Shown piece after piece: positions 1-7,660 of a stretch of 64,000 nt of DNA (its first letter is position 1; every line of letters starts with the position of its first letter). A program made the translations under genes and the position numbers. The stretch is from Cercozoa sp. M6MM (lineage: Eukaryota; Protista; Endomyxa: Ascetosporea), in NCBI GenBank assembly GCA_040357565.1, contig JBDODJ010000006.1; one strand, given 5' to 3'. The notes under the pieces are model-generated. The model made no database searches and was not told the origin of the DNA. It saw nothing but the letters and a program-made list of their open reading frames with translations.

Positions 1-3000
1 GTTGCGCTCCACGTGCCAGTCTACCCAACAGAGAACACAACTATTTTTAGTAGATACATACGGGGGAGGGGGGTAGTTACGCAAGTGAGTAGCGCGAGTC
101 AAGGCTGCTGCCAGAGGTGTCATCACTTGTCTCATTGTCATTGTGGTTGACAGTATTCTCAATGACAGCGCCACCGCCACCTGTACTGGAAGGAGACACG
201 TGCGACGTTGCCACACCACTGCAGGCAAAGAAAAGCGCCGTCAAGTTTCGCCAGGTCTGCACACGAGGTATGTGAGTAGTGATGTGCAATATGTAGACAG
301 GGAACAAGGTAAGCCTACCGTACTGCCGGCGCGATCGACCTCTCGCTCGCGCGAGTCCTCGTCGCTGCCGCTGTTGGCGGTCAGTACGACCGAGCCGCCC
401 ATCCAGCGCGAGCGATCCAGCAGGCACCCGGAAGGTATGCCACTGTGCTGCTGTACATGTCCGTGACTGCCATCGACGGTATCGCCAGTACCACCACCGC
501 CGGTATCCGTGGCAACACCTGCCTGTGAGCGGCCCTGTCTGCCCGGACTGCCGGCAGTCCCGTCGTTGCCGCTCACGCTGAAACTCAAGTCGCGTATCGG
601 CCTCGCTGGTGCCGACTCGAACTGCATCGTGCCCAGCAGGTACAGACGTACCTACGTACACACCAGTCATACGCTGTCCTAACATCAAGACCATTAGTAC
701 AGCCTCAAACGTACCTGCGACAGCATGCGGTGGGCACCCGTGTCGACCAGGCAGCGTGCAATAGCACTCGACACAAATGGCACGAAACTCGACGCGTCCG
801 GACGCTCCAGCGTCAGCGCGTCGTGCACCGTCGTGCATCCGCGCGGAAGAGCACGCGCGGCGTCGTCCAGATTGCCCGGACTGAACTCGCGCAGCATCAG
901 CGCCGCGTCCCGCATGATTGCGTCACCCTGCTCCAACAACGATGACGAGGTATCAGGGAACTAACAAAAAGGGGAGTCACCTTGTCACGCAGCATGCTGC
1001 TGAGACTATGGCGCAGCTCGTCGAGAGCCTCGTCGAGGAAGGTAAGCTCACGCTGCTTGAGCGAGTCGCCACTGCCAGCAGTGCTGCCGCCATCCTTGCG
1101 CATGCTGTTCATGACAGCCTGCACTGAGGCATGTCTTGCACGCAGGCGACGTCTACATCGTAGGTACATAGTACACACAGGAAGGAATGACAGACAGACA
1201 GAGGGGTACCTAGCCAGTACGATCATGGCATCGACCTGCGCAGCCAGCGCCAGAGCGGCCTGTCGCACGGCTGCCGACCGGTGTGCCATGAAAGCGAGTG
1301 CAACGGCATCAACACGTGAGACCCAGCCAACCAGCATCTCCACTCTGTTTAAGGGTAAGGGATAACAAGAGGATAAGGGGGACAAGAGAGGGAGGGAACT
1401 ACCTCGCAGCATCGGCCACAAAGCTCTTGGGTGCAGGTGCCGTACTGCGTCGCTCCAGCGCGTGCCAGATACTCACGAGATCGGCCATGTGGAGCAGCAG
1501 CGTGGCGCACGACTCGTCGTGCCGAGCCAGCGACTGGTCCATCAGCAGGCACGCAAAGCACTCAAGTAAGGCGATGCGCCGGTCGGCAGTGGCACGAACC
1601 ATCAGCAGCTGCAGTCGGTGGTGCGCCGTGTGGGCCACTCTGAAGACAAGGGTGGTTAAAAGTATGGAGCCTAAGTCCATAGCGCGGAGGAGTTACCTAG
1701 CGTCGGCATGCACGACGTACTTGCCAATGAAGCCGCCGGTGCGCGAGCAGTTCTTGCGCGTGGCCTCCAGCAGCGAAGGCGGCAGCAGCGTCGGCATCAC
1801 GCGTAGTGCCGAGATCAGCGTGTCCAGGTGCAGACGCTCCTGCGCGTCCTCGCCGCCGAGTTCCGTGTCGACGTGATCGCCGCTGCTGCCGCCGCTGACG
1901 ACGTTCTTGACGTTACCCAGCGGCGCCATGAAAGCAAACGTAGTTCCTGTCGACACCACATCCACCGGTCGCAACTCCTTGGCCGGGTCTACGAACTCCA
2001 CGCGGCCCAGTTCCTCCTGTACAACACCATCATCGATACGCCTAAACTAGCATAGACACACACAAGGAGCGCCTACGATGGAGCGACGGATCGGCGTGCG
2101 AATGCGCTGAGCGAACACGGCCGGCAGCTGCCGCGCGTCGCGCCGGAACCCAATGCACGCGTCACACACGGCACTATGGTCACATACAAAGTCTAAGAGT
2201 CCTTCAGCTTACAAAAGTTAAAGGGGACACAAATCGACATACATGATGTGCGCCAACTGTTGTGCAAACGAGTCCAACTGGTGCTGATGCGGTCGGAACA
2301 CCTGCGACACAACGGGGGGGGGGGGGGGCCCCAACAGGTACAAGATAACACTGAAAAGGACGAGTACCGATCCCTGCGATCGTTCGCGACCGGTGAGTAC
2401 ACCTTGTCTCCTCTGACCAGACAAGGCAGTCCAATGCACTGGGTGGCATTAGGTAGGAAGGTACCTGAATGAACTCGAGCACGCCAAAGCGTTCGTCGCT
2501 GAGGATCTCGAGAAGACGGAGTCCGAGCAGTACCTGGGGTCATTTGGACAGACACACACATACACATGGAGTACATGATACAAGGCAAGAAGACAGGTAC
2601 GTTGTCCGGCAGCTTGGCCTGCTTGCCGCCCGACAGGAGACCTGCGAGCAGGTGGTTGCACACGCCGTCAAAGTCGTGCACGGCCATCAGCACGGCCACG
2701 CGCACCAGGAGCGGCCACGTCGGCTCCTCGGCGTAGGTCTTGAGTTTCTTGCGTCCGAAGAGTTTCTCGATCACGGCGATCACCTCGGTGCTCTTGAAGC
2801 GCAGAGGCGTGTGCGGCAGGCCAAAGGCCACGTGCAGCTGATCGATCGGCCGCGCGCGGTGACTCGTCGCGTGCGCCGGCGGTTGCAGCACGCCGTGGAT
2901 CTGGAAGAACGACGCCACGGCCTCCAGTCGGTCCTTACGGTGCCGCTTGTCGCTGCCTGTGTGCATCATCGCACGTGTCAACCCATGTACACAACCGATC

Positions 3001-6000: not shown

Positions 6001-7660
6001 CCAGTTGTGCAGCTCCTCACTACGCTGGTCCAGGTACTTGTTCAGCGGGATCATGTACGGCTCCTACAGGGATAATGACACACAAGGTATGGTAAAGAGG
6101 GTAGTGAGGCAGGCTAGGATGGGCTAGAAGAAGCAGAAACCTTGTCGCCAAAGCGCACGCCGTTGCTGAGGTTTTGCAGAACCTTGGTGATCAGAATGAG
6201 ATTCCTTCGCGCCGTCGAGGTCACTTTCGAGGCCTGCACACGCGTATTCGCAATCGCATAAGAATGAAGCAAGACACATACACAGACGGTTGTGTACATG
6301 GGAGGAACAAGGTGATGGCTACCCAGTGAGTCTCCAACTCGAGCGAGGCCGGGTTGATGATGACCGGGTTGATGTATCGCAGGAAGGTGAAACCACCCAC
6401 CAGCGAATCCGACAGGCGTTCGTTGCCCGGGTACCGCGAGTTCACCTGTCACATGGCACGTCCCTCTCGCAATAAAAAAGAAACACACCTGTCCCTTAAG
6501 AAGAAAGGCGGCTACCAGAGAAGCCAGCATGCGGCAGATGCAGCGCATGCCCTCGGGTAGGTTGCTCTCAACGATGGCCGAGAAGAACCAGTCGCACGCC
6601 TCGATCAGCTGCTGCGTGCGCTTGCGAATGATGTCGGCGATACGCGGCGAGTCCACATCGCCCGACTGGCCCTTCTCACTGGCTATACAAGGGGGGTTAG
6701 TAGAACTAATATGATGGCAGAAGAGTCATACCGATCTTGTGTGGATTGATCGACAAGTTGAGCGACGGGTCAGAGAGCAGTTTTTTCAACGGGTCCGCGA
6801 GGATGCGACGCAACGCATCTTGGCCCTGGTCACGTCGGGCAAAGTAAGTCAGCAGCTTGGCCGCCGCCGAGTTCTCGCGCAGGTAGGTGCTGATGTCGGT
6901 GCACTTGGCGAACTCAAGTGTCAGGCAGTGCTGCACCACGCGGAGCAACTGCAACTCATCCTCCGAGTCATATGGGTTCGGAAACAAAGCGGCACACAGG
7001 TCCAGCAGACCCTCGACGTCGCCGCTTTTGGCCTGCAACAGCAGCTCGCCCAGCAGCGGCGCCTGTGCGTGCAGCGTGCCCACCAGTGCGTTGTAGTCGC
7101 GCAGCAAGGGCGCATACTCAGCACACTTCTCACTGGGCAGCGTCCAGGTTCGCGACTCGGCCTCGTGCCGCTTCAGGCGCAGTTGGTTTCGCACTTCAGT
7201 GCCTTTACCTGGGGGGAAGCAGGGATAAAATTTAGGGGCGAAGGGAATAGAAAGGGAGGGTACTCTCGGCCGTGTCGTCATTGGACGAGTTGACTGCGCG
7301 CATATTTTTGGAGAATTCGTCCAAAGCTTGCTTCACGAAAGTATTGCGAGCTGTCTCCTGTAGACAAACGGGGCTCAAACATCGAAGTATATTGCGAGAA
7401 GGATACTGCGAGGGTGGGTGAGGGAGAGCGTACCAAAGTCACACTGTCGTTGAGCTGCCTGCGGAACTGCAGGTGTCGCTGCACAAGCTGCGTGTAGTCG
7501 CCAACGCCTTGTTCACGTAGCAGGTGTAGCAGCTGCCACAGCTCATCGTCCAAATCGCCTAAAGGCACAGATACAGTGCGATAGGCACAGAAACCACGGA
7601 TCAGCAGGTACCATTGGCGAAGGGATTCGCAGGCGGTGCGGCCTCGTCGGTCCTGCCCAT
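1..7660 (-). CDS. FRY: RasGAP (Gap1/IQGAP-related) fused to Furry/Tao3/Mor2 cell-morphogenesis scaffold; multi-exon, 3' end outside window
   Basis: ATG at 7660 (MGRTDEAAPP). In-frame splicing across GT-AG introns gives the RasGAP motifs YLRENS, GGFTFLRYINPVIINP and RRNLILITKVLQNLSNG, then a coiled coil, then Furry N-terminal motifs (DIIDLVAEVVVADTL, AWAAVMFQLS..VYDKF, VLVRSPQSFF, IEKLFGRK..LLVRVAVLMAVHDFD, ALRVMPTLLP, VDAVALAFMAHRSAAVRQAAL). Confidence 0.8.
4125..4190 (+). repeat. Intronic ~14-bp minisatellite (ACAAGGAACAGGRT)
   Basis: Imperfect tandem copies of tacaaggaacagg in the intron at ~4115-4218. Confidence 0.6.
5204..5381. repeat. Compound (CA)n(GA)n microsatellite with 10-N gap, inside intron 5173-5389
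   Basis: Directly visible. Confidence 0.97.
5940..7200 (-). other. RasGAP domain exons, arginine finger and FLR motif intact
   Basis: LRENS near 6870-6885 matches the NF1 FRGNS finger. FLRYINP near 6365-6385 and KVLQNLSN near 6165-6190. Confidence 0.9.

Follow-up and report, generated by a model that had tools for sequence, protein, structure and literature searches.

We analysed a window of 64,000 nucleotides (nt) of genomic DNA from the amoeba Cercozoa sp. M6MM (contig JBDODJ010000006.1 of assembly GCA_040357565.1, 23.6 Mb in size; the window, meaning this whole stretch, is G000:C6:124001-188000), at one end of which a large gene runs on the minus strand from an ATG at position 7660 to beyond position 1. 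M6MM is a marine fish-gill amoeba that was assigned to Apofilosa (Rhizaria) (PMC11069148) and later received the name Lemnamoeba sinaloensis (PMC13746701). The genome is compact: intergenic distances have a median of 162 bp, and genes carry about 13 introns with an average length of 82 bp (PMC13746701). The gene appears to encode a single protein in which a GTPase-activating protein for Ras (RasGAP), carrying the catalytic residues of active members of this family, is joined in frame to a very long tail that looks like an orphan helical-repeat region. The locus is already represented by a public model, MES1907540.1 (MHM6MM_000643; 3,523 amino acids (aa), "hypothetical protein", Cercozoa sp. 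M6MM), which was found by protein search. The features on which the following account draws are these:

7658..7660, minus strand: start codon (M1), earliest ATG in the open segment 7747-7604, at which MES1907540.1 starts too
4629..7660, minus strand: exons 1-12 (aa 1-723), predicted IqgC/GAP1-type RasGAP module, delimited from the exon table, positive coding scores and structure matches
6162..6936, minus strand: RasGAP domain PF00616 (aa 181-369; Pfam), split by three introns
6877..6879, minus strand: codon of the arginine finger, R200 in YLRENS, from the alignment to NF1 and IQGAP1
6377..6385, minus strand: FLR motif, F325-L326-R327 of FLRYINPVIINP, from the alignment to NF1 and IQGAP1
5173..5389, minus strand: intron 10 (217 nt), mostly (AC)n and (AG)n, containing the N gap 5319-5328; donor 5.1 bits, acceptor 8.1 bits
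4573..4628, minus strand: intron 12 (56 nt, phase 0) at the junction of RasGAP module and tail, evaluated by leave-one-out splice scores
4534..4536, minus strand: ATG of M736, 12 codons past the junction, the candidate start of a second gene should two genes have been merged
1..4572, minus strand: exons 13-29 from the exon table, the part of the tail that lies in the window (~aa 724-1912), with exon 29 extending past the window start

MES1907540.1 was produced with funannotate, using RNA-based training, a PASA update step and jaccard_clip, an option designed to split fused transcripts; the RNA data set for the organism is SRX22918777. When threaded on the DNA, this protein is spread over 43 exons, starting with ATG 7660 and terminating at a stop codon at C6:118143-118145 (L002:4143-4145), 5.9 kb past the window start, so that the tail continues beyond the window to aa 3523 and comprises ~2,790 aa in all. 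Our own model, obtained on the minus strand with an exon-chain finder trained on splice-signal matrices, has 41 exons, encodes 3,516 aa and stops at window coordinate -5855; it agrees with the public model on introns 4573-4628 and 5173-5389 and on most others. Searches were performed either exon by exon or with MES1907540.1, which was used for all whole-protein searches. Upstream of ATG 7660 an in-frame stop is found at 7750-7748, with no ATG between the two. The 42 introns of the gene are of the GT-AG type with a consistent splice signal and measure 49-106 nt, apart from two long introns that hold simple repeats. The in-frame codon-usage score is positive for all exons of at least 16 codons and negative only for exon 19, which has 15 codons. 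For this exon, located at 2368-2412 in MES1907540.1, the finder took a different route (2231-2373), and because of the negative score and the differing path we regard the gene model as uncertain at 2231-2412. The same-strand gene upstream stops at 8016-8014, leaving a spacer of 353 nt to ATG 7660, which indicates how far apart tandem genes lie in this region; the other flanking spacer, past the stop of the gene, is ~335 nt long. In line with an earlier note on this DNA, which had been made from the sequence alone and had described one frame running from ATG 7660 through GT-AG introns and a RasGAP domain, the open segments, the exon chain and MES1907540.1 all support such a frame.

The first part of the protein was readily classified. 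The RasGAP profile PF00616, which the earlier note had proposed to run on the spliced protein, matched MES1907540.1 with 126.2 bits (cut-off 28.3; E = 2.1e-36; profile positions 2-207 of 207), and it was also recovered exon by exon on three exon segments. In the alignments to NF1 and IQGAP1, R200 falls on the Arg of the NF1 motif FRGNS, where IQGAP1 has the Thr of VTGNP, and FLRYINPVIINP aligns with FLRFINPAIVSP of NF1 and YYRYMNPAIVAP of IQGAP1, giving the core FLRYINP as against FLRFINP in NF1 and YYRYMNP in IQGAP. Furthermore, ITKVLQNLSN aligns with MSKILQSIAN of NF1, and the lysine of the alpha7 helix is kept. The RasGAP thus carries the catalytic residues of active GAPs, as judged by alignment, and the claim that an arginine finger (LRENS) and an FLR motif are intact here, unlike in IQGAPs, was upheld by comparison with NF1 and IQGAP1/2. 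Among solved structures, those closest to aa 125-448 were the GAP-related domains (GRDs) of IQGAP1 (E = 1e-21) and IQGAP2 (2.5e-18), followed by NF1 and p120GAP at ~1e-14; this search of the sequences in the Protein Data Bank (PDB) matched the GRD and no other part of the protein. The IQGAP1/2 alignments are continuous over exon junctions 4/5, 5/6, 6/7, 7/8 and 8/9, and since the IQGAP and NF1 alignments cross the junctions, the GRD introns 4/5 to 7/8 are confirmed and the donor at 6515 of the public model is favoured over the one at 6488 chosen by the finder. The module consists of an N-terminal region, the GRD, a helical region and an S/T/A-rich linker that begins at ~aa 681. An RGCT-like region, which had also been noticed earlier, did not emerge from the Pfam searches: RasGAP_C (RGCt) was found neither on the whole protein at E ≤ 10 nor on segments covering exons 10-12. 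CH, WW and IQ domains were likewise not found by Pfam on the whole protein. In a six-frame profile search PF00616 matched no other locus of the 23.6-Mb assembly, a count that is a lower bound for an incomplete assembly, and because of this the gene is possibly the sole RasGAP gene; it may be the only or the main RasGAP-domain gene of the organism. GAP activity on Ras is probable, given the domain and its residues.

The frame passes a sequence gap and, at the junction of RasGAP module and tail, one short intron. The gap (5319-5328) lies in intron 10 within one (AG)n run, between (AG)23 and (AG)27, with (AC)n adjoining; the repeats of this intron extend over 5204-5382. The gap is separated from the donor by 61 nt and from the acceptor by 146 nt. 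Because the gap is intronic and the exons on either side of it are phase 0, the frame is independent of the gap length. Could the scaffold nevertheless have been misjoined at this point, so that exons 1-10 and exons 11 onward derive from separate loci that both end in (AG)n? It weighs against a continuous gene that the contigs of the only sequencing run holding DNA of this locus, which is probably the assembly's own source, stop at 5173 and 5391; no read or contig spans the gap, and none of the contigs bridges 5174-5390. Moreover, the genome is unusually rich in simple repeats, which occur very frequently and are known to have broken the short-read draft (PMC13746701). On the other hand, an identical (AG)n repeat flanks the gap on both sides, the donor at 5389 and the acceptor at 5173 are good and of equal phase with an open frame on either side, no stop or start that would finish a gene lies near the gap on either side, and depth and composition are similar to its left and right. 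We consider such a misjoin very improbable, and even if true it would leave the junction at 4573-4628 unaffected. The window contains eight N runs in total, and a second 10-N gap is located beyond it in intron 40 (L002:5765-5774) inside an (AC)n repeat (L002:5681-5833); intron 19 contains a G15 run (2314-2328) at which a DNA contig also breaks. Gaps and breaks associated with repeats at this locus fit the published remark on fragmentation of the draft by simple repeats (PMC13746701).

Intron 12 links the RasGAP module to the tail. Its donor scores 7.1 bits (median 7.7) and its acceptor 11.5 bits, the second best of 42, giving a combined 18.6 bits that places it in the top 5 of the 42 introns. 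No decoy GT..AG pair reached this value, whether within exons (1,204 pairs, drawn from 10.6 kb of exon) or in the intergenic DNA on either flank (81 pairs), the decoy maximum being 12.1 bits; of ~21,000 GT..AG pairs in the remaining window, a set that includes real introns, six reach 18.6 bits. Splicing keeps the frame, which is open before and after the intron, as had been stated earlier for this 56-nt phase-0 intron. If the intron is retained, translation would run into an in-frame TAA at 4589-4587 after 13 extra codons. MES1907540.1, an independent model, makes the same join, which carries some weight and is no proof for the junction. A single transcript is predicted from the open frame, the splice signals and the public model, and we think it quite probable, on the strength of the sequence, that RasGAP module and tail belong to one gene. 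Several observations weigh against this. The coding score falls to ~0 bits per codon over aa 681-720, in the final 40 codons just before the junction; aa 1-735 are sized and laid out like a complete stand-alone IqgC/GAP1 protein, with domain positions and a finger (R205) in Dictyostelium IqgC to which they fit (PMC12871552); a methionine (M736) follows only 12 codons past the junction, as it would in two merged genes; intron 12 contains a (TA)6 run (4588-4599) that precedes ATG 4536 by 52-63 nt and might act as a TATA-like promoter element; spacers in this genome can be short, their median being 162 bp (PMC13746701); and predictors often fuse neighbours in compact genomes. Accordingly, gene prediction could have merged two same-strand neighbours, namely a ~736-aa RasGAP ending with TAA 4589-4587 and a ~2,788-aa helical-repeat protein starting from ATG 4536-4534. 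Against such a merger, the spacer between them, from the TAA to the ATG, would be only 50 nt, compared with 353 nt and ~335 nt on the flanks of the gene; the splice score of 4573-4628 ranks among the best of 42, with decoys far below; splicing preserves the frame; and the public model that joins the two was built with RNA-trained tools, a PASA update and jaccard_clip. Because the first ~735 aa match a complete stand-alone RasGAP of the IqgC/GAP1 kind, the merger stays a live rival, albeit an unlikely one. Contigs from two other organisms of the same study match just 4584-4618 of this intron (35 nt, TA-rich) with less than 90% likeness, and their flanks are unrelated; the match is coincidental, a product of low complexity, and does not indicate a relative.

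The nature of the tail was addressed by several types of search. No Pfam family was found in it, either on the whole protein or on the exons. phmmer with exon 14 (233 aa), in which the earlier note had seen the N-terminal domain of Furry, returned MES1907540.1 alone from 1.84 billion representative proteins, and word-seeded searches with aa 740-1600 and aa 2940-3140 gave the self-match alone. No paralogues of exons 14 and 41 were found in the genome itself, nor were relatives of the tail found in metagenome contigs. Language-model look-alikes of exon 14 were PSME4, BIG2_C, Tra1, TANGO6 and DNA-PKcs; those of exon 41 were Tra1, HEATR5A, USP9X-ARM, Mon2, listerin and GBF1, and MOR2-PAG1_mid came no higher than rank 15 of 30 clusters (score 0.94). 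A single-sequence AlphaFold2 model of exon 14 consisted entirely of helices, at low confidence (predicted local distance difference test (pLDDT) 43.7). Given self-matches alone, no Pfam family, look-alikes of the HEAT type and an all-helix model, the tail looks like an orphan, lineage-specific region of HEAT-type helical repeats. Among its low-complexity inserts is a Q-rich tract in exon 36 (aa ~2700-2760; L002 ~7100-7300), because of which weak Pfam hits (CPSF100_C, PTPRCAP, TFIIA and others) are considered spurious.

The earlier note had placed the N-terminal domain of Furry directly after the junction and had proposed that Ras inactivation is coupled to signalling by NDR kinases through a RasGAP-Furry fusion. 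Three Pfam families define Furry: PF14222 (MOR2-PAG1_N), PF14228 (MOR2-PAG1_mid) and PF14225 (MOR2-PAG1_C). PF14222, the profile suggested for the spliced protein, matched neither exons 13, 14, 17 and 22 nor MES1907540.1 at E ≤ 10 and gave no hit at E ≤ 1 in the six-frame genome; PF14228 and PF14225 had none at E ≤ 10 on MES1907540.1 or on exons 32, 35, 36, 40, 41 and 42 and none in the six-frame genome, and the three profiles found nothing on the open segments. The same kind of genome search readily picked up RasGAP and MOB exons, the latter (Mob1/phocein) at at least four loci (G000:C591:3521-3973, C426:2677-2952, C77:47642-47743, C3:183545-184006 and C10:55767-56194). It also uncovered a large family of RGS domains, with 23 six-frame matches in the assembly. 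The tail is therefore not demonstrably Furry by its sequence, and because no profile or sequence search identifies it as such, the link to NDR signalling is unsupported. The tail could still be a very divergent orthologue of Furry/Tao3/Mor2, in which case the gene would be a RasGAP-Furry fusion tying Ras inactivation to the NDR-MOB module. In favour of this, the tail is like Furry in its length of ~2,800 aa and its all-helical, HEAT-like character, one of the 30 look-alike clusters of exon 41 bears MOR2-PAG1_mid, and a hidden divergent Furry is conceivable because MOB is present while canonical Furry is undetected throughout the assembly. This explanation has to contend with three profiles that, at E ≤ 10, match neither the ten tail exons searched nor the whole protein, with an exon 14 that retrieves only itself and has no Furry among its look-alikes, and with an exon 41 for which MOR2-PAG1_mid is no better a look-alike than Tra1, HEATR5A, USP9X or Mon2; we judge it improbable. 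Two stretches, aa 2976-3000 (..FRAL..) and aa 3074-3100 (..ALRLL..), to which Pfam is blind, may resemble conserved blocks in the C-terminal part of Furry, and we treat them as a lead and not as evidence. The two motif words were found in no paper. Should a Furry orthologue have diverged past profile detection and the join be real as well, which we also judge improbable, the only detectable RasGAP would sit on an NDR-kinase scaffold, and retention of intron 12 might give rise to a free RasGAP isoform. Taken together, the frame, the RasGAP domain and the junction intron of the earlier description stood, and the Furry N-terminal domain and the RGCT-like region were not confirmed; of its interpretation, the canonical RasGAP residues, the long second part and the strong splice signals at the junction were supported, and the Furry identity and the NDR link were not.

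Our preferred reading is that one L. sinaloensis gene encodes a protein of ~3,520 aa in which an IqgC/GAP1-type RasGAP is followed by a ~2,790-aa lineage-specific HEAT-like tail, a reading to which we assign a probability of roughly 60%. According to this proposal, the first ~735 aa would constitute a complete RasGAP of the IqgC/fungal-GAP1 type that has kept R200, R327 and the lysine of the KVLQNL helix and would speed the hydrolysis of GTP by Ras, as NF1, p120GAP and IqgC do. The S/T/A-rich linker and the phase-0 intron would connect this module to the all-alpha HEAT-like tail, whose role would probably be to scaffold the GAP or to target it, by analogy with the helical arms that surround the GRD of neurofibromin/IRA. 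If the join is real, the only RasGAP gene detectable in the assembly would encode an IqgC/GAP1-type enzyme on a huge lineage-specific scaffold; besides neurofibromin/IRA, this would be a second, independent instance of a GAP mounted on a giant helical arm, and the catalytically active IQGAP-related branch, represented in Dictyostelium and fungi, would extend to Rhizaria. As it stands, this is a predicted gene model with an orphan tail, and the NDR link is unsupported.

The model of this gene is already in the public databases, where it is an unnamed hypothetical protein, and in a search of the literature we found no paper joining RasGAP with Furry and no paper on a Furry structure. A word-seeded search for long proteins resembling aa 100-740, limited by the word seeding and by its fixed length window, returned MES1907540.1 alone. 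With no relatives of the tail detected, there are no grounds for calling the architecture widespread nor, judged by its sequence, for calling it a RasGAP-Furry fusion. With Furry/Tao3/Mor2 the tail shares its size and helical-repeat character, and MOB genes are present in the genome, but none of the three defining Pfam families matches it. IQGAP1 and IQGAP2 provide the best solved-structure matches to aa 125-448; IQGAPs are not GAPs, having Thr for the finger Arg and YYR for FLR (PMC12871552), whereas Arg and FLR are canonical here. An IQGAP sensu stricto was ruled out by these residues, at which IQGAP1/2 have Thr and YYR, and by the failure to find CH, WW or IQ domains. NF1 and IRA1/2 likewise contain an active-type RasGAP within an otherwise helical-repeat protein of ~3,000 aa, and the catalytic residues align one to one. 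However, the GRD of NF1 is central and followed by Sec14-PH, whereas the GRD is N-terminal here and Sec14/PH were undetected; there is no similarity outside the GRD, and the GRD is closer to that of IQGAP than to that of NF1. The protein would thus belong to neither the neurofibromin nor the Furry family, and its likeness to neurofibromin would lie in the working principle. The comparison is closest with Dictyostelium IqgC, an IQGAP-related sequence that is an active RasGAP with finger R205 and the motif LLRYINPAVVTP, consists of a RasGAP domain and an RGCt domain and is most closely related to the fungal GAP1 family (PMC12871552). As far as can be compared from that description, both proteins have an IQGAP-like GRD that retains the finger and (F/L)LRYINP (PMC12871552), and the finger of both lies at about residue 200 (R200 and, in IqgC, R205) of a module of ~735 aa; the L. 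sinaloensis protein differs in that RGCt is undetected by Pfam and that ~2,790 further residues follow in frame.

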